Under the pieces are notes generated by a model. The model was not told where the DNA came from. It saw nothing but the letters and a program-made list of their open reading frames with translations, and made no database searches. The position numbers were made by a program, and so were the translations under genes. From positions 169,880-233,879 of the forward strand of contig DF236998.1 of assembly GCA_000708835.1 (NCBI GenBank): 64,000 bases of DNA, given 5' to 3'. The DNA is from Klebsormidium nitens (lineage: Eukaryota; Plantae; Klebsormidiophyceae). Numbering within the stretch: position 1 is the first letter of the stretch; each line of letters opens with the position of its first letter. Below are positions 31,935-51,703 of this stretch, in pieces.

Positions 31935-33725
31935 ATGGTGCTCTCATGGCTTCTTTCTCTGTGGTCTCCTGCGATAGCTTCTAAGCGGTCCCACTCTGAG
32001 CTTGAGGGCCACTCCGACGATGAGGCAGAGCGCTTGCAAGAAGAGGAGCAAAGTGCAAAGCGCCTGCGCATTATTGGTTTGTTCAACAATGAGGAATGCA
32101 CCGAAGAGCACTTTGAGCCAGACAGGTTGCAGAGCACAGCGGAGGTGCTCTTCAGCAAAGGAGTGCTTGCGCGGGAAAGAGGGGAAGACGCAGATGCCTT
32201 TGAGTTTTTCAGAATGAGTGCGGTAGCTGGGAGCGCCAACAGCATGATAGAGATGGCACGCTATTTTCTAGCTGGGACGGTTTGTTCAAAGGACGTCATT
32301 GCCGCGCAAGCGCTGCTGAGAGCCGCAAGCAAGCACAGCTTTGTGGACTCTGAACTGCTTCAAGACTGCGAGGATAAAACTGCGGAGATGGCAAACGCCA
32401 GGCTGCCAGCAGGCGCTGCATTCCCGAAGATTCTCGAGCTATTGTGCACTCTGGACAGCGAACGCATCGATGCGCAAAGGAGCGCCAAAGACATGCTGTT
32501 TGAGCTAGCCAGAAATGAGGACTCGATTCAAATACATTGGCTGGTGCGCCTTTTGGGGAGCGAGAACGAGATCCTGCAGGAAGTGGTGGCGGATGTTGTC
32601 AGCGATTTAGCGGAGGGTGAAGAGGACGGGCCTGGTCTTGGTGCGCTTCCAGGCCTCCTAGAGCGGCTGCTGGACCTTTTGATGAGTGCGCGCGCGCGCG
32701 CGACCACAATGATCATGGCGGCTGTGGCACTTGAAAACCTGGCAGTGGACGCAAAGAATCGGGACAAGATCCTGGCTGTGCCGCGAAGTTTGGAGTGTCT
32801 GACGACGCTTCTCTGGGGTCGGAGCGCATTAACACTGCAAAATGCGGCCGCGGATGTTTTGTACAATTTGGCTCAAGGATCAAAAGCTTCCACCGTTCTG
32901 AGCGCAATTGCATCTGGGCCGGAGACTCTGCGCAAATTGGCCAACCTTCTTAATGGCAGGCCGGGCTTGAAATCATCAGAGACCTTAGGGGCATGGGCGC
33001 TCGCGAGCTTGGCACTTGACACAGAAACTGGGAAAGCTATAGCGGCAATACCGGGCAGTCTAGAGGGTTTGGTGCGCCTTTTGGGAAAAGATAACACGGG
33101 GCAGGTTCAGGAGCAGGCCGCGAGGGCCCTTGCCAACCTGGCGCTCGAGTCGAGCAACAGCAGAGCCATCGCGCGCGCGCCGGGCGCGGTCGCGTGCTTG
33201 GTTCCCCTCCTGAGCAGCCCTAGCGCGGGCGCGCGCATGCGCGCCGCGCGCGCGCTCGTGAACCTGACGTGCGAAGTGGAGAACAAGCCGCGCGTCGCGA
33301 ACACGCCGGGGACGTTGGACGCGCTCGCGCGGTTGCTGAGTTGCAAGAGCGCGGTCCTGCAGAAGTTTGGCGCGTGGGCGCTCGGAAACCTCGCACACGG
33401 CCCGAAGCTTAAAGCGCAAATCGTGGCGGTGCCGGGGTGTTTGTGCGGGCTGGTGGGGCTTCTGGGCAGCCGGAAGGCGAAAGTCAAGGGATACGCCGCG
33501 AGGGCGCTGGCCAACTTGGCAATCGGGGCGGCGAACAAGAAGGCGATTGCGGAGGTGCGGGGCGCTTTGGAGGCTTTGGTTCGTCTCGAAGGAAGTTACG
33601 ATGCGGAAGTGCGGGGGCAAGCCAAGAGGGCACTCAAGAATCTCGCGGGGATGAAACAGAATAGGGTGAAAATCAACGCGGCCCGGCTCGGCGGTGGGGC
33701 TCTCTTAAAAGCTGGGTGTCCGTGA
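31935..33725 (+). CDS. Intronless Sel1-like repeat + armadillo-repeat protein (596 aa), paralog of the upstream gene
   Basis: Uninterrupted ORF with repeated L..LV.LL.S....Q..AA.AL.NLA units. N-terminal Sel1-like helix pair (AFEFFRMSAVAGSANSMIEMARYFLAG...KDVIAAQALLRAA) is aligned with the upstream paralog. Confidence 0.9.
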   Translation: MVLSWLLSLWSPAIASKRSHSELEGHSDDEAERLQEEEQSAKRLRIIGLFNNEECTEEHFEPDRLQSTAEVLFSKGVLARERGEDADAFEFFRMSAVAGSANSMIEMARYFLAGTVCSKDVIAAQALLRAASKHSFVDSELLQDCEDKTAEMANARLPAGAAFPKILELLCTLDSERIDAQRSAKDMLFELARNEDSIQIHWLVRLLGSENEILQEVVADVVSDLAEGEEDGPGLGALPGLLERLLDLLMSARARATTMIMAAVALENLAVDAKNRDKILAVPRSLECLTTLLWGRSALTLQNAAADVLYNLAQGSKASTVLSAIASGPETLRKLANLLNGRPGLKSSETLGAWALASLALDTETGKAIAAIPGSLEGLVRLLGKDNTGQVQEQAARALANLALESSNSRAIARAPGAVACLVPLLSSPSAGARMRAARALVNLTCEVENKPRVANTPGTLDALARLLSCKSAVLQKFGAWALGNLAHGPKLKAQIVAVPGCLCGLVGLLGSRKAKVKGYAARALANLAIGAANKKAIAEVRGALEALVRLEGSYDAEVRGQAKRALKNLAGMKQNRVKINAARLGGGALLKAGCP

Positions 33726-39587: not shown

Positions 39588-40622
39588 TCAGGTCAAACCA
39601 TGTCCTCCAGCCAAGACGCATTTTGGAAACAATTCTGAAACTGCGGAATTTACGCACCAGTTGCCAGAATTCGACGTGCGATCCCACATGCGTACCCAGT
39701 AGTCAACCAAGGACTGGGCTGCAGCTAGATGTGACAGCTGCTCTCTATATGCTCTTGACCATGGATCAGGTGGTGTCAACGACCGCAGCTCAGCGACCTG
39801 CACCCAAAGTTGTAACACCGAGAGAGACACAGATTGACGCTCGTCATGGATCTTGAAGGGAGCCCAGGTGCCAGCTGGGCAGTCTTTAAGGCCAGGCGTT
39901 GTTTTGAAAAAGCGCGCCAGCTTCTCGAGTTGCGAGCGCAACACCGTCTCGGGGAAGGTCCCCTCAAAGCGGCCGTGTAGAAAGTCGTCCATTAAACCTC
40001 TACATTCTTCTACAAATGCTGCGGACCGCTCTGGATCGAGCGAACTAGGACCCATTCCGAGAAGGGGCTGGAGCTTTGAAAGGAAGGCCATCAAGTCAAA
40101 GGGGCCCTTGGTCCAAGCTTCCTCAGCTGGAGCGGAGTAAACATAGTCAAGGTTCAAAACTTTCGTTGCTTGAATGCCCCCGACTTCGTCTGTTGCTGTC
40201 GCAGCATTGCGCTTCCTTTGCTTCCTCTTGTTCTTCTTGTTCTGAGGTTTGAAGCCCAAACCTTCTTGACATCTATTGGTGGTTCGCAGAGATGAAAATA
40301 CTGAGGTTCCTATTACAGAATTCTTCACCCATGTTGGCAGATGATGTTTCAAAGCTGCTTGGATGTTGTCACTATGACTCCGCAACTGAGTGCCGTAGTG
40401 GACATCATCTGTCCACAATCCCCAATTCAGGAACAAAGAGGAATGCCTTTCACGTGCGACTTGCCCCGGACCACCTCTGAACAAGCCCTGACGGCGGAGA
40501 CATGCGCTTGCAACGCAAGAAACACGCGCCAAACGGGAAGCTCTTGTCTCCACAGAAAGACACCCGCGAATGTGCGAACTTGCTGTGCTATCCAGGCGCG
40601 CCATGACTGCGTCCGCCATCAT
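39588..40622 (-). CDS. 344-aa ORF of unknown function; either a separate gene or the 5' exon(s) of the aldolase gene
   Basis: Long open frame with protein-like composition, an Arg/Ser/Ala-rich N-terminus and a basic cluster (NKKNKRKQRKR). A donor at 39657 (TG|GTGCGT) is phase-compatible with the acceptor at 39251. Confidence 0.6.
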   Translation of the reverse strand: MMADAVMARLDSTASSHIRGCLSVETRASRLARVSCVASACLRRQGLFRGGPGQVARERHSSLFLNWGLWTDDVHYGTQLRSHSDNIQAALKHHLPTWVKNSVIGTSVFSSLRTTNRCQEGLGFKPQNKKNKRKQRKRNAATATDEVGGIQATKVLNLDYVYSAPAEEAWTKGPFDLMAFLSKLQPLLGMGPSSLDPERSAAFVEECRGLMDDFLHGRFEGTFPETVLRSQLEKLARFFKTTPGLKDCPAGTWAPFKIHDERQSVSLSVLQLWVQVAELRSLTPPDPWSRAYREQLSHLAAAQSLVDYWVRMWDRTSNSGNWCVNSAVSELFPKCVLAGGHGLT

Positions 40623-41140: not shown

Positions 41141-44100
41141 ATGGCGGCTATGCAGGGAGAGGCAGATGCTGCTGGGGTCAGCGAGCTGCCTCCAAAGCCG
41201 TGGAAGCAAAGGCGCTCAAAAAGGAGCTCCGTTGAAGGGCCAATAGAGCCAGCCGACATTGAGATCTTTGAAGGGAAAGTACAGAGTTCTAGTGTCCCTT
41301 CAGCAGTAAAGCCTACTTCTGTGGCTGGTTATACGAAAGTGCGAACTGGGGATGGGTTCCAATTTGCTGTGCCAACAGTGGTGCTGTTGGAAGCTGAGCA
41401 AGTGAAGCTGATGCTCAATTCAAATGGTGAGAATGATTTATGAAAGTGAGGGAAACTTCTGAGTTGGGAGCTTACCTGATCACTCATAGTCAAAGGTCAT
41501 CAACAATCAGTCAACGATTTGGCACTGGCCTTGATGACGTTGCGTACAGGTCAATGTGTTAAACTGGAGCGACTTTCTGCCATATCTGAAGGGTGCAGGC
41601 TGGGCAACCCTTGGCAGGTCACTAACAATCTGTCAAGATTGTGCAAAACAATCTTGAACACATTTTTTTAAGCATCAATTACCTACATCGTCCAACGTTG
41701 GGATGTAAATTGAGGCTCGGACTTGCCACAGAACTAGGAAGTTACTTGCTCAACAGCCATGAATATTGAGGGAGGCAACAGCAATGCTTGTCAACTCGCA
41801 TTCCTGTCCCTTGTTGTAATCTTGGCCTTGAATTGACATGACGGCTTCTGATAGAGTTTCATAGCTCAGGTTATTTCATCGTACTAGGAAAGTTGTGAGA
41901 TGCTGAACCTGTGATCTAGCCGGATTTCAAGTTGTCGATCCTGACCAATCGTGGCAAGTGCCTGACCAATCGTGGCAAGTGGCTACAGTATGATTCAAGA
42001 ACAATAAGATTTGTTTGGGCTTTTGCTCTCCCTAACGAAGACTCTCTACCTTTGTTCACAGCAACATTCAAAGAGAAGGCGGAGAATGTCGTTTATTTTC
42101 AAGAGATCAGAGGAGAGGTACGCTCTCAGTGCACGTGTATCTGCTATATTATCAAACAACCTTCTTGTCAAATTGCTTTTGCAAGTTTGCTGCATCTATC
42201 AATATACCCTGTTTGTCTTATACACTTCGCAGTCTCTTGGCTAACACAACCAGAACCTAAGGAGTATTTCTTCCTATGCAACTATCTCCTGCTGAAGTGA
42301 AGCCCTGATTGCCCTGCCACTGAGTCGATTGGAAAAACATGCATTCAGATTTCGCCAAACATGTCAACTCTTATATATCATAGGCACCGAGCTTTTAGGG
42401 TCTTTTGACTTTTTCAGAGCAAGATTCTGAGCAGGCTTGTAAGTTCAAGCCAACTTGAGAACGCTCCCTGTCATTGATCGTGGAGAATCCGTCTAGAGAA
42501 GACGTTGTGAAGGAACTGTGCTATATCTTATTTGACAGATCAGGATTTTGCTAACCTTCCAAGAGTAATAAGAAGATTAAGACATGAAGGGATGCACTTC
42601 CTTCCTCCTGCTCAACCGGTTTCGAGATGTGAGTCACAGAAGGGCTAAGGACCTCAACACTCTATTCCTCAGGTCTTGGAGGTCGTCCTCCGTTTCTGTT
42701 TTGAGGAGTATCTGAATAAGGCCCGAGTGGAGCAGCTGTACGGAGCGTCTGGTCCCCGACCCCGCCTCGCTTTCCATTTTGAGGTGGGTGTGGAGCACTT
42801 TCAACAAGGAAATCAAGGCTTCATCCATTTTGAGGTGCTACATTTTGTTGTAAGTTGTGCTGAATCTCATGTCTAAGACGTCTCGTTGCATGATGTGTGA
42901 GATCAAAAAACACCATTCAATCTTCTGAATTAATAGAAGATCTCAGAGACCACGTCAATGGACAAATGTGCGGAATCAGCAGCAATTTCTCACTCTGTTC
43001 AGATTGAGTCGAACCGTTTCCACGCTGTGTAGATTCGAACGGATGTTTTATAAGCCTTGAGGAACAAGAGCATCACTTGGCTCGGACTGGTCAAGACAGG
43101 AAATTGACATGAAACGAACGATGGATCATCCTACCCGTTTTGACGGCAGGTTGCGCCGGCACTAGCCATGGAGATCATCTCTGCGGCGCACTTCCTGGGA
43201 CTGAAGGAGCTCCTCCAATTGGCGGCCGCTATGGTGGCCCATCACTTGTCGGGTGAGCCCTTCAGCTCCTGGTTGAAATTGCATGATTTGTTTGGATCGT
43301 AGAAGTACTGGCCGTCCCTCACGACTTGGTCACCAGAGTGCAACGCCATAAGACTCCGTTGGGAACGCCCTCATGAGTGGCGGCTCGCGTACGCTTGTTC
43401 AACGCGGGAATGACGAGCCCAGAATGTTCGAAAGCTTTAAGATTGCCCTCAAGTTTCTCACAGCCAAAAGCGAGAGTCGAAGAACTTACTCATTATTGAA
43501 ACAAAGTATAAGGCTTGCAACGTTCGGTGCTAAGTTACTGCAGCCCCCGAATGCTCACCAATCTGGGTATAAAAGGGGCATACCTGAACGCGATCTCGAC
43601 TTCCAACGCGATCGAGCTCACTCTCTTTGCAATATCTCCTCGAGCGTCGCACCTCATCTTACTGCTCTTCGTTCATAAAAACTCACGTCAGCAAGCTCCG
43701 CTTGCAGACGTTCCTGACGTCAGCACGCTGCCCAAGGACCTCGCCTGGGTTGTGGCTCAGCAGCTGAGCCTTGAGGGATTGCTCGAGGCAGAAGACCGGG
43801 AGGACTTTCAAGCAATCGGTCTCGGTGAGGCGCACCTCCAGTCCGTTCTGTCAGGGCTTTACGATTTCAGAGCTTCAGGGTGTTCGGGTCGGAGCCTGCC
43901 GCTAGGTTGCAGCAGAAGAAGTTGACACGAGACGCGAGGCGCTCTCCAAAAGGCTCACTTGAAGACCAGGAGAGACGAAGCTAAATGGGGCATCCATTTG
44001 TTGAGGAGTCTAAACAGACTCCCCGTGTATGATGAGAAGTCGAGCCGTTGCTGCTACAACAAGTTGCGGAGATCAGGCAGACGATATTCCAAAAGTCCCT

Positions 44101-47100
44101 GCTTTTGTAGCAGTCCGGCTTCAGAAGAACTAGAGTCCTGCTTTCAATCCGGATTAAAGAATTCTTAGGATGTCCACGGTGCCCACTGTAAGCCTGATCG
44201 CTGATGAAGCGAATTGTGCTCCTCCTCCTGAAATTGCTGTAACGTGTGAACAACCGTCTATTTGCATGGTTTCTGGCAAACGTCGCTGGCGCTGTGCCCT
44301 CGTTTCTAACGGGCTTGAAGGCGTTCCCCAGATGACAGCCCTATCTCGGAGAGGCTATGCCGAACCCGCGCTAAACCGGGACCTCTCCCTTAGGCCTTCC
44401 AAATTAGTTCCGATTTACAGCACCAGAGTCTTGCTTCTGACTCTCGCAATCAACTTTTGAAAAGAAATATAGTCGAAATCAAGCCTGCTTTAGGAGACCA
44501 TTTGTCGCTCCTTTGATACAGATACCAGCTCTATACGGGTATGCTATGCCGTACCCGCGGCTGGACCGGAACGTCCTCCTTAGGCCTTCCCGAATACTTG
44601 GACCTGGGAGAGCGGGGGACCGGAAGGCAAGCTGCTTTAGAAACCGATCGTCGCTCCAATTGCACAGATACCAGCCCAATCTGGGAGGGGCTGTGCCTGG
44701 CCCGCGGCTGCACCGGGAACTTATTAACCTCTCGGGAATACTCGGAGCTGGCAGAGCAGAGAAATCAAAAGGCAGCTTGATTATGAAACCGATCGTCGCT
44801 TCTTTTGCGCAGATACCAGCCCTATTTGGCAGCGACTGTGCCGTACCCGCGGTGGACCGAGACCTCTTCCTTAGGTCTTCCGGAACACTCAGAACTGGCA
44901 AAGCGGGAGAAAGGAAAGCAAATCTAATAAAGAAACCAGTCGTCGCTCCCTGTGCGCAGATACCAGCCCTATTTGGGAGCGGCTATGCCGCACCCGCGGC
45001 TGGACTTGGACCTCTTCCTTGGCCTTCCGGAACAATCGCAGCTAGCAGAGCGGGCAAACCGAATGCAGGCCTGATTGAGAAACCGATTGTCGCTTCGTTT
45101 GCGCAGATACGAGCCCTATCTGGGAGCGGCTGTGCCGTACCCGCGGCTGGACCGGGACCTCTTCCTTGGGCCTCCCGGAGCAGTCGGATCTGGGAGAGCT
45201 GTCGCCCTTCGACCCCGCTGCGCCCGACTATTGGAAGCGCGTCTACGTGACGCACGACCTGCACTTCGCCTCTGTCCTGCAAACAGAAGGCGAGCCATGC
45301 GCGTTCCGCCTCTCTTTCTGCGTAGAAACGGTGTGAGCCAGGGCTTGCGCGCAATCCCGTTTGTGTCCGGTCAACGTTCCCGTAGGACTGGCGTAGCCTG
45401 CCCGTTCCTGAGGTTCAAGACTTCGTCGACTTGCCATCTCTCCCTTTGCCAAAGGTACAAATGGATGAACTCATGAGAGTTCTATTGCTGGAATTTCGGA
45501 TGGTGGAAAATTTAGGCAATTTTTTTTGTGCCCCGAGAGCAGTGTGTATCCCAGTAAATTCAGCCACTCGTTCTGTTCCTTGCAGAAAAGTTTCCTGCCT
45601 TCTGTGCGAAGCTGCAACGCTGGGGCCGTTTTGCAGCTTTCCAGATGGTAAGATTGCTCAAGTCGGTGTTCAAGTGGCGGCTTCATGTGTTACCGACAGC
45701 CCACTTCTTGGCGGTCCGAGCGTCCGTTGTTCCTGACGTACTCGCCCCGTCGTATCTAGCTCGATGTCGTTCCCCCAACCTTTCAATAGACGCCAGATAT
45801 ACTACCAGTGCTCCTCATTCTGCCCGCCCCACCACTCTGCACGTAAAGGCGCCTTGTATCTTTGAGAAATACCGTCAAGAAGCCAGTTCAGTACGCCAAT
45901 CACGCTACTTCCTAGAGGTTTCATCAAACTGAGCCTTTGCTCTCTCCAGAATCTTTTCATCCTTATTCCTCTTTGGAGAAATCCCAGCCCGAAAGGAAGC
46001 TCCGTGGCGGGTCTGAGAGAAACGAAACGACTTGTGGCAAGCTCCCAGATTTTTGGGATCGAGCCACCGTTAGACCACTTCATAGACTGTTCATAAATCA
46101 GTAACATCTGCTTTAAGGCATTTCCTTGTAACGCAGGTTGGACGTCCCTTTTACGAGGACGTGCTTCTTCCTTACTTTGGCGAACACGCGCTGGTCCGCT
46201 ACGCTGCTCTCTTCCCAGAGCTGAGATGGCTGTGTGAGACAACGCCCCTCGCTTCGTGTCATTTTTTATTGACACGAACTGCTTGCGGAATACTCTGCAC
46301 CTTTGCTTCGCCCGCTCCAGACTCTCAATCGCAAGATGTGAGGCTTTCGATTGTTATGGCTTTCATTAGGATTGCCGTAAGTGGCGGATTGCTGACGTTG
46401 ATTCGCGAGGGCTTGTCTTCAGAATTATGCCCGAGCTCCCCTGCGTTTAATCGGCGGTGGGCTTTTCCTGCAGTGCTCAGTCAACTGGACGGCAAAGTAC
46501 TTCAAAACCAGGAAATAAAGGTTGAGGGGACGACGCCTCCCTTCGACTTCGAAGCGCTTCTGTGGGCCCTGCCAACCTGTCAAGTCTTCGACGCGAGGTT
46601 CATCAGGTATGATGTTTCGAAGCATGAGATCAAGGAGAATAATGTTGAGCCTTACTCCAACTGACACGAAAAACTCTAAGCCCAGAAAAAGTACCTGCTC
46701 TGCGCTTCTACCCGCCCTAACCCCCATACGAACCCTACCCGTCTCAGTGCGGTTACCTTATTATTATCTGAGCTTATTATTATCTTTCTTGAGTTCGCTT
46801 TTCTAAGCAAATAAAGGTGGTAGCGATGGTGAGCTGCGTGTGGTGCGATCGGTTGGGCATCTGCTTGGGCAGGGCATCCATTGTTTTCAAACCAGCCCTT
46901 TACTGTGTTTCGACACCACTTTGGGACGTCACTCAAAATGCTGTCCCAGCTGCGCTTGTGGAAGTGCTTGGCAGCCCTTCAGGGTTTGAAAATCTCCTGC
47001 ACATGTGACACTTGCATAATAATAGCTGAGCCTCCAGAAGTCTTTCTGCAGCGACTCGCGTGCCCGCAGCGCAACCACTGATGAGGCAGTCGAAAGCGGT

Positions 47101-50100
47101 GGCGAGGCGGATGCGCTCAGCAGGGGCGTTGGAGCTTACGGAAGGTGTGGAGATCACTCGCAATTACTACCAGGATTCGACATCATTACATACATAAAAG
47201 ATAGCATCATTTTTGTGCGCGACGGGCCAGGATTCGGCTACAGATGGCTTTCCTGGGAGGCTACGCAACATTTGCGCGAGTGCCCTCGGATCCGGTTTTA
47301 GCTGAAGGTGTAGCTAGGATGCTCGTTATCAACTCGGATGTTTGGGGTCCGAGCAGGGACTGGACCGGATTCTGCTTCCAACTGGCCCTTGATAGATTCA
47401 GAGATCGCTCTCGTTGTTTGCACATGAAGCGGATGCATTACCTATCTTGTCGGTTTCCCGGATGTTTGCTGCGACGTCCGACAAACTTTTGTGCACCTAG
47501 GAGCAGGTCAGGCGAAATGGTATAGACGCGAGACCGCATTTGAGCCGTTGAAATATCGGGTTGGCGACTTGCGAGATGTTAGCATTGTATGCATCTTGAT
47601 TGGGAGGATGGTGAGAGTGCTTTGAAGATGTACTGCTTTTGCGGGCACAGGTTTTGGATTATGCAATTCGATTTGCTTGCTTTTGAGGCAAGTGGACTGC
47701 TAGAATGCTCGTAAATCTAACATGAGGGCTTCTCACAACGCGGCTCGAGATTGGATTTATAATAAATCGACAGCTTCTTTTCGGCAAGGGTACAGGGCTC
47801 CATTCACGTCGCTATTACCCCTTAACCGCTCATAAGTTGACTTCCAAACTATTGTTAGAATTGCATCTGTTCGACAATTTAACATACCCGGACCTTTAAC
47901 TTTGCGATCGTCGCTGTAGGCTACGGATGTCACAGCTCAAGCTTGCGTACAACCCCCTCACCAGCGAGGAGCTGTGGGCGATACTGCGGTCGCTTCCTAG
48001 CTCCAGGTGAGGACCACTGGTTTGAGAAACCCGTTAAGGCAATTACTCTTCGGGTCAAGGTTGAAAGGGTTGCTGCAGACCCTGTAACTGAAATTGTCTC
48101 GGCCCATCTGCTTGCCTCAGAGCACTAAGTCGTGTACTACCGTTTGCTTCTTATTTCAGGGGAGAGCTGCGTAGACACAGCGATGAAGGACATCAGCTGC
48201 CATAAAGATTGTGTGACCGCAATAGCAACTTTGGCGTATCAAAGCCACAAATCCCCAGCTTCGTTCCGGCCGCAAATGGTATCAACGATCGGGTTCCTGT
48301 TCAGTTCGAGTTTACGGATGGATTCCCAGCAACTGTTCACAAAAAAACGGCAGCTCCTGACTTTCCGCAGCTCTTTTGCAGCCTGAAGACGTTGGACCTC
48401 AGTTACTGCGATCTCGACTCTTCCTCGGCTCCGCTCGACGTGCTGGAGGGCCTGCGCGGCTCCATCTTGGAAGCACTTTTGCTCTCAGGTACGTTTTGTC
48501 AGGACACTTTCCGTCCCTCCCTTTCCTTTTCCCTTTACATTGCCTCCATTGCGGCCCTTTCGCGAGCAAAATGTTCCCCTGATCTTGCACGGCTCTGAGG
48601 ACTTATGAATCTGGTTCCCCCTGGATTTTAAGGTGCGTCTCGAACCTGGGGCGCTCTCGAATTGCCGGCTCTGAAGTCCAACCCGCAATCCGCTTGTAAA
48701 CCAATCTCCGTTTGGTTCAAATGTTTGTTGACTTTGTCGTGACTTCGGGCAGAGATACCAATTCTCAGTTGGTCCAGCCATTGCTTTTCGAGCAGGGAAC
48801 CCCTTCGGCATGCCTCAGCGAAAGCCCGAGGAGATTCCGGTCGTCGAAGGGTCCTGGCGGAAAGTGAGCGGAATCTGGCGGAAGACCGTCCAAACCGCGT
48901 CCCCCCGGCGCGCGCCGAAAGCGCCGCCCAAGAAACCGGCGGCTCGGAAAAAGGGCCCGGTAAAGCGGCCCGAGTGGAATCTCTGCTTTGATAACGTGGA
49001 AGGAGACGGGGGGGAAAGCTCGTCTGCGGCACAGACCCCGGTTGGAGATGACTCGGGTGGAGCTAACCCGGGTGGAGATAAGCCGGATGGAAAGAAACCG
49101 GTCGGAGCTAACCCGGGTGAAGCTAACCAGGGAGGACCTAACCCGGATGAAGATATCTCGGGTGGAGATAACCGGGGTGAAGCTAACCCGGGAGGAGCTA
49201 ACCCGGGTCGAGATGGTCCTGGTGGAGATACCGCGCGAGCGGTCGGGGGGAAAGGAACGAGTCGCGATTCGGAGGAAGACCGACCGGCCACATCTTCTGG
49301 GGCAGGAGATGCAAAACGGGGCCCCGAGAGCTGTCAACCGAGTGAGTCAGGGGCAGAAAGGAACTCCGTAGATGCATTTCCGGGCACCTCTTTGCGAGAG
49401 GGGGGGGCAAGTTGTGGTCCGGAGCAAGTAACCAGCTCCTCGAGGCAGAGCCCGGGCGATAATGAACCGGGCGCGTCGACGGCAGGGGAAGCGAGTCAAA
49501 GCGCGCCTCATCGGACGGAACAAGACGGCGGTGGCGCGGGGGATCTTGCAACAGAGAATGGTGTCCCGGACAGTGCTTCGATTCGGACGGCTGACCCCGA
49601 TCGGAAGGGCAAGGACAAGATCGAAGACGGGACGCCAGGAAGCCCTCCGTACCTTGCGGAATCGTCGGAACACACGGCGGACCGGAAAGGCAAAGCGAAA
49701 GTGGACGAAGGCCCTTCAACCGTTTCCGATCCTCCTGTTGATGACGCTTCCAGCCGGACGGAAACCAGCGCCTTTCCCGGGGAAGTCAGAAACGGCAGGC
49801 ATAACGGCGCGGAATCGTCCGAAAAGTTTCCCTCGCCCGAGGTCGCCTCGACCGCCGCTGACGTCCCCGCCATCATTTTCGGTTCGATCCTGACGTCACT
49901 CCCGCCGACGCTCAAGAAGCTCGCGCTCTCCGACTGTGGCCTGGGGGACGTCCACGTGGCGCAGATCGTGCGTGGGCTGACGTCAGCGGGGTGCGCGCTG
50001 TGGGAGCTGGACCTGTCGCAGAACGAGGTCTCGGCGCGGGGGGCGAGTGCCGTCTTTGTTTGGCTCCAGGTGGGGGTGGTTCTCTGAGGGGTCCGTCCTC

Positions 50101-51703
50101 CTGTTTTGAGTTCTTTCTTTTAGTCAAAGACGGTCTGCACATGGTCATTTCGTGGGTGATTACGAAATTGGTCCCAAACCCAATGTGCCGCCTTTGAGGG
50201 CTCCAGGTGACTACCGCTTCAGGGGACGTTCGTCTGATGATCTTCAAATCTCGTTCTACTTTCGTCAATCCCGTGGTTGACCGTTCCTTGCTGGGGGTTC
50301 GCGGATCGGCCTCGAATATGTTCGACAACAAATCAATTATCCCTATATGCAGAGGGCGGTCTTCAATCAGGTCTTGGTGAGGACGCGCTTTTCTTGACTT
50401 GGTGTTGACCTCAGGCTGTCAATTAGTGGCTGATGAAGTCGCTCTGTCTTCGCGCAGCACAACGATTCTCTGCGTCACTTGAGCCTGGCTCAGAACAAGG
50501 TGACCAGCACATGTACGGACGACCTGTTGGGCGCGTTGCAGAAAAACACCACGCTTTCAAAGGTGAGGTCATGCTTACGTACTTTTCAGATTCTCGACTC
50601 AATTGGTGTCATCAAATAGACCGAAGACTTTTCTTCCATCTTTTGCGCGTTCCTTGTCTTCAAGCCTAAGCCGGACTTCTAGGATAGCTGTTTTCGAAGT
50701 GCTGCATGATGCGGCAATCAACTCTCTTTTTCTGCACCCATAAATCAAGGTATATTCTGAAGATCAAAGGTGCCTTTACCTTCTTCGGTACTGCACATCC
50801 GCCACAATTGACCTTCCCAACCGTAGCCCAGCCAGACAAGTTGTGTGCCGTCGGATGAGGTACATCCGGGCCATCGAACGGGCCAGCATTTGCTCTGTGC
50901 CAGATCCTGCGATCGGGTCAGATCGAACGCGCTTTCTTGAGACGGTCAGCTTTAGCCTTAGTCACTCAGCAGTAAAACCGTCCTCTTTGTCGCTTAACCA
51001 CCTGCAATTTCCAAAGGACCTCGGTGACCTCTGCCGGTGGCTCTTGTATTGTGCGAGCGACTTGAGACCCCTCTTGTTCGGTCGTTCAAGCCTAATCGCA
51101 TGTGCCTGTGAAAGGCTGCCCAAATGGTTTACTCTTCTACACCAACACGACCGTCTTTAACCAAGTTCCACGTCGCAAAGGCGGGTTCCTTCCCGGCCGT
51201 TGAGAAGATTACATCCCGGATATAGTTGCCTCCCTTATTGACATGACATGTTCCAAAAACGGTAAGGCATTTTTATTCGTGATTCTATTGGCTGAAACCC
51301 TTACCGGGTTGACCGCGTTGACCGAAACCGAAACTTGAACGACTAACCCCCTACTAACCACAGCATATTCCCTGCTTCAAAAGCTAAAAACTTCTAAACC
51401 CCATATGAAACCCTTCATCGCAAAAATCACAAAACTTCCAAGGGGGAGGACATTCTAGTTCGATTCTGTGCTGACTGGAAAACGGGATTTGTGCAGCTTT
51501 CATTGGCGGGGAATTACTCCTTCGGCGAGGAGCGCGTCTCCGAAGTTTTGGAAGCTGCCCGCGAGCATGCTGAATTGCTTGTGGCCCTAGAGACGGCCAC
51601 AGTTTTCAGCCTGGATCTCTCCTTCATTGACGTCACATACGCAGCTAGGAATAGGTTCCGAGACACTTATGCGGGTGTTGCACAATTGGACCTTCGAATA
51701 TGA
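41141..51703 (+). CDS. Elongin-C/SKP1-like (BTB fold) domain + BC-box/cullin-box-like segment + RNI-like leucine-rich repeats
   Basis: Well-supported exons: 41141-41426, 42062-42117, 42673-42783, 43150-43252, 43708-43824, 45107-~45289/45330, 48382-48488, 48796-50069, 50458-50562, 51497-51703. Tentative exons: 46137-46233, 46474-46606, 47052-47144, 47920-48006. Elongin C-like YTKVRTGDGFQF...FKEKAENVVYFQEIRGEVLEVVLRF...EVAPALAMEIISAAHFLG; LRRs LKTLDLSYCDL, LKKLALSDCGL, LWELDLSQNEV, LRHLSLAQNKV, LSLAGN. Confidence 0.8.
41940..41981 (+). repeat. Perfect 21-bp intronic tandem duplication containing a CTGAC branch-point-like motif
   Basis: CCTGACCAATCGTGGCAAGTG x2. Confidence 0.95.
44320..45190 (+). 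repeat. Six-unit tandem array (~146-bp period), each unit an acceptor plus the first ~70 nt of the exon at 45107
   Basis: CAG|AT junctions end at 44331, 44521, 44667, 44812, 44959 and 45106 (functional). Spacings are 190, 146, 145, 147, 147. Each unit is a degenerate DTSPIWERLCRTRGWTGTSSLGLP. Confidence 0.95.
49090..49235 (+). repeat. Coding minisatellite (GANPGG/GDN-type peptide repeats, CTAACCCGGG motif) in the disordered insertion of the LRR protein
   Basis: Repeated GGAGCTAACCCGGG(T/A)GGAGA units translating to GGANPGGDKP...GANPGEANQGGPNP...GEANPGGANPGRDGPGGD. Confidence 0.85.

Follow-up and report, generated by a model that had tools for sequence, protein, structure and literature searches.

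In the textbook description of Cul1, Cul2 and Cul5 ubiquitin ligases, the adaptor (SKP1 or Elongin C) and the box receptor occupy separate chains, the two being fused only in the Cul3-BTB systems. The question raised by a locus of the alga Klebsormidium nitens, at positions 41141 to 51703 of the window (the 64,000-nucleotide stretch of contig DF236998.1 that was analysed), is whether adaptor and receptor are joined there in another form. The first-pass annotation, made from the letters alone, had proposed an Elongin C-like domain continuing into an Elongin A-type BC-box/cullin-box and then into leucine-rich repeats (LRRs), all in one protein. The analysis reported here confirms that the adaptor-domain exons and the LRR exons form one mRNA and one expressed gene. 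The product very probably comprises an Elongin C/SKP1-class fold with its own A5 helix, a box-like module ∼10-12 residues further on and then two LRR blocks of the ribonuclease-inhibitor (RI) type.

Evidence for a single transcript came from Logan RNA contigs of four runs from four studies, placed on positions 43145-49140. Individual contigs, one of 3407 nt (X11) and one of 3274 nt (X9), extend from >250 letters 5' of exon 4 into the LRR exons, and the spliced joints between exons 4 and 13 read identically in all four runs (43252/43708, 43824/45107, 45289/45586, 45647/46137, 46233/46474, 46606/47052, 47144/47920, 48006/48382 and 48488/48796). A loose contig end before 43148 proved to be the 3' end of exon 3, joined to exon 4. 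Exons 1-3 and 13-15, which lie outside the contig-covered stretch, were placed from GT-AG sites, contig-size arithmetic, gapless orthologue alignment and the matching exons in a related alga. The mRNA is ∼3.4 kb, and the model fits the contig size with a 5' untranslated region of ∼60 nt and a 3' untranslated region of ∼320 nt. Transcripts ending ahead of the LRR exons, which would have pointed to two genes, are thus not what is seen, since the spliced contigs, the complete coding sequence and the contig size all agree with one mRNA, and the joining of adaptor and LRRs in one protein, as first proposed, is borne out. The peptides quoted in the first-pass annotation were all located on the + strand of the window, and the locus has a eukaryotic gene structure with ∼50% GC. 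Its parts are as follows.

41141..51703, + strand: whole coding region, 15 exons, coding sequence of 3021 nt, 1006 aa; ATG at 41141, TGA ending at 51703.
41141..41426, + strand: exon 1, aa 1-95; disordered N-terminus carrying the conserved PPKPWKQRR...IEIFEGK, followed by the beginning of the predicted BTB-type fold (GYTKVRTGDGFQFAVP...).
42062..42117, + strand: exon 2, aa 96-114, ATFKEKAENVVYFQEIRGE; Elongin C-like FxE...F.EI segment.
42673..42783, + strand: exon 3, aa 115-151, VLEVVLRFCFEEYLNKARVEQLYGASGPRPRLAFHFE; predicted helix A3 and connector.
43150..43200, + strand: exon 4, first half, VAPALAMEIISAAHFLG; predicted helix A4, end of the Elongin C-equivalent part.
43201..43252, + strand: exon 4, second half, LKELLQLAAAMVAHHLS; predicted A5 helix of the BTB fold (SKP1 H6-like), which fits the BC-box core LxxxAxxxV.
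43708..43824, + strand: exon 5, DVPDVSTLPKDLAWVVAQQLSLEGLLEAEDREDFQAIGL; first half of the putative F-box/Elongin A-like box, in which LPKDLAWVV fits ΦPxxΦxxxΦ.
44543..45199, + strand: 147-bp tandem array of 4.5 copies, repeating the 3' end of intron 5 (polypyrimidine tract and acceptor) and the first ∼95 nt of exon 6.
45107..45289, + strand: exon 6, DTSPIWERLCRTRGW...DYWKRVYVTHDLHFASVLQTE; second half of the box region, ending ...LQTE and followed by a GC-AG intron.
45586-45647, 46137-46233, 46474-46606, 47052-47144, 47920-48006 and 48382-48488, + strand: exons 7-12, first LRR block, aa 286-478, with joints taken from the RNA contigs.
48796..49860, + strand: exon 13, first part; low-complexity insert of ∼340-390 aa (aa ∼480-835).
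49861..51703, + strand: end of exon 13, exon 14 (50458-50562) and exon 15 (51497-51703); second LRR block, of the RNI type, and conserved C-terminal tail.

The gene model is also corrected in several details. The splice dinucleotides were checked at the joints of exons 4-13, and that at 45289/45586 is a GC-AG intron (intron 6, 45290-45585) in all four runs; the mRNA therefore leaves the exon after DYWKRVYVTHDLHFASVLQTE via the GC donor at 45290, and not further downstream as had been supposed. The acceptor of the exon encoding IWERLCRTRGW had likewise been misplaced: from among the tandem acceptors of the array, the RNA contigs use the last copy only (45107). The junction of exons 1 and 2, given earlier as NSNGATFKEK, reads NSN-ATFKEK. 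An apparent joint at 49140 that 'goes back 37' was rejected as an artefact of the end of the contig-covered stretch, the 23 letters reported as lying between being the window's own next bases. As to the array itself, the copy just upstream of the one used runs into an in-frame TAG as read from the sequence, and in the related alga one or more additional partial copies lie upstream of exon 6 (contig L001, 15576-15629). In one run (X1), low-depth unspliced contigs cross introns (43795-45135, 47116-47947 and others), for example at a depth of 13.9 against ∼180-220 for the spliced form, which suggests pre-mRNA or some intron retention.

The locus is a member of a conserved streptophyte family, present in Klebsormidium, bryophytes, a lycophyte, ferns and Ginkgo, and conserved since before plants colonised land. 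Exhaustive HMMER searching with exon 1 as query returned a 104-aa open reading frame (ORF) of the related alga (62% identity), the Adiantum nelumboides protein MCO5563097.1 and an 88-aa fragment. Word searches started from those matches yielded full-length orthologues of 611-709 aa in land plants, namely Selaginella, Physcomitrium, Ceratodon, the liverwort Calypogeia, two Adiantum species, Ginkgo and several transcriptome entries. The algal model is collinear with the Ginkgo protein (aa 4-483 at 36% identity, E 8e-71; aa 843-993 at E 4e-23), and the sole large difference from the land-plant orthologues lies between the two LRR blocks, where they have ∼40 aa in place of the exon 13 insert; the latter is rich in G, A, N, P, D, E and S and carries 15- and 60-nt tandem repeats at 49037-49230. 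Word searches with the Selaginella and Ginkgo queries found no angiosperm, chlorophyte or non-plant member and no full-length algal protein; since shared 5-mers are needed for a match, such absence is only suggestive. The Selaginella (UniRef) and Physcomitrium members bear the database name 'BTB domain-containing protein', and a literature search on BTB-LRR proteins and on this family found no paper on the family. The possibility that the architecture is already common and annotated thus applies in part, in that it is conserved in land plants under that general label.

A metagenome contig of the related alga (L001) carries the same exons, of which exon 3 is 92.5% identical, and comparison with it gave ratios of non-synonymous to synonymous substitution rates (dN/dS) of 0.03 for exon 3, 0.04 for exon 4 and 0.07 for exon 5, with values of ∼0.2 for both exon 6 and exon 8 (dS ∼0.9-1.5 throughout). 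With dN/dS of 0.03-0.07 across exons 3-5, constraint is strongest, among the parts measured, in the core of the adaptor and in the box's first half. Separately, the annotated model of MCO5563097.1 contains the N-terminal unit (KPWKQKRK...EIFEGK... and the start of the fold) three times before jumping to the C-terminal LRR tail, a triplication that reflects either tandem exon duplication or mis-assembly/mis-annotation.

What, then, is the N-terminal domain? Single-exon Pfam and PDB searches with the adaptor domain returned nothing useful, because four exons of 18-37 residues share it between them. The further Pfam, AlphaFold and fold scans were done on the orthologues. A profile of the orthologue domain searched against PDB sequences found Elongin C best (E 2e-4 to 3e-3, ∼18 distinct constructs), covering nearly the whole chain (residues 14-110), with SKP1 proteins second (E 0.006-0.05), mainly via helices H5-H6 (profile positions 95-129); there was no classical BTB protein among these matches. 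An AlphaFold2 model of Physcomitrium residues 40-307, with a predicted local distance difference test score (pLDDT) of 80-90 over residues 45-220, retrieved Elongin C and SKP1 at the top of a Foldseek search, followed by SPOP, KLHL and KEAP1. Pairwise comparison with VIA-align gave Z 10-10.9 against Elongin C (root-mean-square deviation 1.6-2.7 Å over 77-95 residues), model residues 45-150 spanning Elongin C from end to end, and Z 9.8 against ASK1 over residues 45-223. The Atlas shape search agrees with an Elongin C/SKP1-class fold. The N-terminal β1/α1 dimerisation element is absent, the model starting, past a disordered tail, with a strand at residue 47, and the Pfam Skp1_POZ family matched two of the 11 orthologues only (E 0.16). 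Since PDB profile, Foldseek, VIA-align and Atlas results agree, assignment of the N-terminal domain to the Elongin C/SKP1 class of BTB fold, in its short form, is well supported by sequence profiles and predicted structure. The Elongin C likeness that had first been drawn from a hand alignment is therefore upheld, with Elongin C ranking first by both profile and fold.

The tail ahead of this fold (model residues 1-43) has a pLDDT of ∼30-35. It includes the motif PPKPWKQ(R/K)...(I/V)E(I/V)(F/Y)E(G/S)K (window 41186-41272, aa 16-44), which is invariant from the alga to Ginkgo and predicted to be disordered; KPWK and E..K are invariant in the 11 orthologues. Its role may be that of a short linear motif or of a nuclear localisation signal.

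The segment LKELLQLAAAMVAHHL, which is encoded in the same exon past FLG, at the point where Elongin C ends, had been read as the BC-box, with a SKP1-type C-terminal helix offered as the alternative. It aligns with H6 of SKP1 (helices A4-A5 matching SKP1 H5-H6), and a helix is predicted at residues 151-163 with a pLDDT of 88-90. Elongin C lacks A5, which SKP1 and other BTB domains possess (PMC1257465). On the basis of the SKP1 H6 alignment, the predicted helix and the known presence of A5 in BTB folds, LKELLQLAAAMVAHHL is, by alignment and model, the ordinary A5 helix of the fold, and the SKP1-type helix is the better description. The same segment also fits the BC-box core LxxxAxxxV, the first position of the consensus being E in the alga. 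The position of an A5 helix in cis may be the one that a BC-box takes when provided in trans, in which case the two alternatives would describe one element.

Beyond A5 lies the box region (aa ∼186-285). The consensus for a BC-box is (S,T,P)Lxxx(C,S,A)xxxΦ, and a Cul2-box ΦPxxΦxxxΦ comes 8-23 aa after it (PMC3355856). In the alga, a BC-box core LxxxAxxxV is followed 12 residues later by LPKDLAWVV, and nine of the 11 orthologues have the two patterns at the homologous site; no LPΦP Cul5 box was seen. Weak matches to the Pfam Elongin_A family (PF06881) occur in eight of the 11 orthologues over profile positions 1-76 of 105, starting just after A5, and weak F-box or F-box-like matches occur in one or two of the 11 (E 0.1-0.2; 0.11-0.18). 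Three short helices and one longer helix appear in both AlphaFold2 models, i.e. that comprising adaptor and box and a second comprising the orthologue box and first LRR block. Box residues have a pLDDT of 84-90 if the adaptor fold is part of the model and 66-74 if it is absent, a gain that hints at packing in cis. The language-model search with the box region gave scores of 0.75-0.79 to unnamed clusters and was uninformative; a match to PDB entry 4hfx (an Elongin A fragment, E 1.2) was not used, the part of Elongin A in that chain being unverified. Evidence for an F-box- or Elongin A-like helical module is thus weak but consistent between sequence and model. The Elongin A-type BC-box/cullin-box proposed at the outset stands to the extent of the weak PF06881 matches and the fitting patterns, and falls short in the scores considered below.

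The repeats had been described as RNI-like LRRs, and this description holds. LRR_6 matches were obtained at the end of algal exon 13 (E 2.1e-6) and in Selaginella (E 1.5e-10), with a weak LRR_1/LRR_6 match in exon 12. The second AlphaFold2 model matched RanGAP1, NOD2, NLRP3 and RNH1 at Z 15-16, the overall set of matches at Z 13-16 including tropomodulin and axonemal LRR proteins. RI-type LRRs filled the list for this model, and no F-box LRR protein or Rad7 aligning with the box included was among the matches listed. By sequence match and predicted fold, the repeats are of the ribonuclease-inhibitor/NLR (RNI) type and not of the F-box LRR (FBXL) type.

Elongin C (ELOC/Elc1) is the adaptor of Cul2 and Cul5 ligases and, in yeast, of Cul3 ligases. 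The domain described here resembles it in being a short BTB fold without the dimerisation extension, and F-x-E...V-x-F-x-E-I...VL and AA-x-FL are common to both. Elongin C, however, is a stand-alone chain of ∼100-112 aa and stops after A4 (PMC1257465), whereas here A5 is present and the fold forms the N-terminal module of a 1006-aa protein. SKP1 or ASK1 with an F-box LRR protein (SKP1-SKP2, ASK1-MAX2/TIR1) presents the same order of adaptor fold, LP-type three-helix box and LRRs, here in one chain; unlike that system, in which the SKP1-cullin-F-box (SCF) ligase divides these parts between two polypeptides, the algal protein lacks α7-α8 and PxPN, and its LRRs are RI-type rather than FBXL. The box is like that of Elongin A or Ela1 in its weak PF06881 match and in the spacing of the BC-box core and ΦPxxΦxxxΦ, 12 residues apart as in VHL-box proteins. 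Rad7 is an LRR receptor bound to Elc1, and PDB entry 5zb2 is among the fold matches. Elongin A differs in having a TFIIS-like N-terminus and no LRR, and the Elongin A and Rad7 systems carry box and Elongin C on different polypeptides.

A parallel to the whole arrangement is provided by the Cul3 BTB adaptors (BTB-BACK-Kelch proteins and SPOP), which have adaptor fold, helical box after A5 and substrate-binding repeats in one chain (PMC3597819); the Atlas shape search aligns 166-173 model residues with BTB-BACK proteins. Their BTB domains are long and dimeric and score well with Pfam BTB, whereas the domain here is sub-threshold and its box is F-box/Elongin A-like by sequence, not a 3-box/BACK. 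Proteins with a BTB fold and LRRs in one chain have been reported in UWE25, an endosymbiont related to Parachlamydia (43 proteins; PMC1257465); those are bacterial and probably effector-type, and no homology to the plant family was seen, no homology test having been made. The fusion of an adaptor fold with a putative receptor part, as first proposed, is not unique, a single-chain adaptor plus receptor being the norm for Cul3-BTB systems (PMC3597819). The principle is known, and it is the building blocks that are unusual, i.e. an Elongin C/SKP1-branch fold, an F-box/Elongin A-like box and substrate-type repeats.

By analogy with these systems, the protein may be a single-chain cullin-RING ligase substrate receptor, a reading to which we would give just short of an even chance. 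The box would pack in cis against the adaptor fold, in the way of an F-box with SKP1 or of a BC/SOCS box with Elongin C; adaptor fold (plus box) would dock on the N-terminus of a cullin, and the LRRs would hold substrate. Yeast Elc1-Ela1 and Elc1-Rad7 offer a precedent for CUL3. The likeliest cullin would be CUL3 or CUL1, since Cul2 and Cul5 have been described as animal-specific (PMC2785787). The protein would then act like the Cul3 BTB-3-box adaptors, but from the Elongin C/SKP1 branch of the fold; BTB-Kelch proteins have themselves been called 'single chain analogs of ... Skp1/β-TrCP1' (PMC3597819).

Several observations weigh against this reading. Pfam BTB scores in the orthologues are 13.8-17.2 bits against a cut-off of 20.5, and no Pfam model reaches its curated cut-off over the N-terminal 280 residues. 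The SKP1 C-terminal α7-α8 extension (PF01466) finds no match in the orthologues, the PxPN motif of SKP1 is absent from B3 (IRFPD in orthologues, VYFQEI in the alga), and AAHFLG has His where AANFL/AANYL of Elongin C and SKP1 has Asn. In the box, the best Elongin_A score is 16.9 bits (E 0.0067-0.009) against a gathering cut-off of 29.8, the gapless 47-residue alignment of the 56-residue core to the FBXW7 F-box has an E of 1.3, and a BC-box/Cul2-box pair arises somewhere in 7-10% of shuffled sequences. Fold matches listed for the LRR model include no FBXL protein. Finally, the orthologues on which the scans were run are ∼35% identical to the algal protein, for which they serve as proxies.

It is from such observations that the likeliest alternative draws, in which the BTB-type fold and the following helices would do no more than cap an RI-type LRR protein or mediate its interactions (cf. 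RanGAP, tropomodulin, N-DRC and CARMIL), the protein being a scaffold that engages no cullin and takes no part in ubiquitylation. The resemblance of the LRR block to RanGAP1, NLRs, ribonuclease inhibitor, tropomodulin and axonemal LRR proteins, with no F-box LRR protein among the matches listed, counts in its favour; every ligase-box match is sub-threshold, the whole family shares the features that depart from Elongin C and SKP1 (the His of AAHFLG in place of Asn, and the lack of PxPN), and many BTB-fold proteins bind no cullin (PMC1257465). Conversely, the nearest BTB-fold relatives by sequence and structure are two dedicated cullin adaptors, the module that comes next resembles exactly the boxes that bind those adaptors, and the first half of the box is among the most constrained parts measured. 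Such a scaffold is therefore considered unlikely, if still deserving of serious consideration.

A use of the modules in trans appears decidedly improbable. Here, the box would bind free SKP1/ASK, making the protein a conventional SCF receptor, or a BC-box partner or Elongin B would be taken up by the Elongin C-like fold, with the protein bridging or dimerising modules. The alignment of the box with a true F-box without gaps is compatible with this, and the linker from A5 to the LP motif, at just ∼10-12 residues, could constrain an arrangement in cis. However, the box reaches its higher pLDDT only with the adaptor fold and is lower alone, and A5 would already fill the position kept vacant for a partner in Elongin C (as judged from PMC1257465). 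That the locus is an artefact, whether a merger of two adjacent genes (one small and Elongin C-like, the other encoding LRRs) or a run of chance exon-like ORFs in a repeat-rich region, can scarcely be credited: the tandem array and low-complexity repeats within the gene span and the lack of Pfam matches to domain pieces searched singly would favour it, but the spliced 3.3-3.4 kb contigs bridge both parts in several studies, the ORF is single and uninterrupted, the order of parts is the same in 11 collinear orthologues and the related alga has the same exons, so that the two-gene reading is ruled out.

Taking the single-chain receptor as the preferred reading, a further step may be considered, namely that the family is the surviving single-chain form of an Elongin C/BC-box (or SKP1/F-box) module, having kept the A5 helix that free Elongin C has lost and obtains in trans as the BC-box, and that it assembles with plant CUL3 or CUL1. 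This more specific proposal is regarded as doubtful.

Elsewhere in the window, two ORFs lie upstream of the gene, and neither has any bearing on the fusion. That at 31935-33725 (+ strand, 596 aa) matches Arm, HEAT and ARMC5/PUB-type ARM repeats (Arm E 7e-16), and that at 39588-40622 (− strand, 344 aa) has no Pfam match. An Rfam scan of the window gave no matches.

According to Marín, BC-box ligases are late in origin and evolved independently in animals and in yeast, a view that would be falsified only by the discovery of further Cul3/Elongin A complexes in animals or plants (PMC2785787). Should the family described here bind a cullin, it would bear directly on that question. Were no cullin bound, it would still represent an uncharacterised and strongly constrained streptophyte protein that makes an unusual use of the Elongin C fold. 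The Physcomitrium member offers a tractable system, knockouts being routine in that moss, and the family as a whole would allow the idea that the BC-box is a detached A5 helix to be put to the test. If the more specific proposal of a surviving single-chain form assembling with a plant cullin is true, Elongin-type ligase modules would not be an invention of animals and yeast, and the family would provide a direct model relating the two-chain adaptor/box systems to the one-chain BTB/3-box systems.

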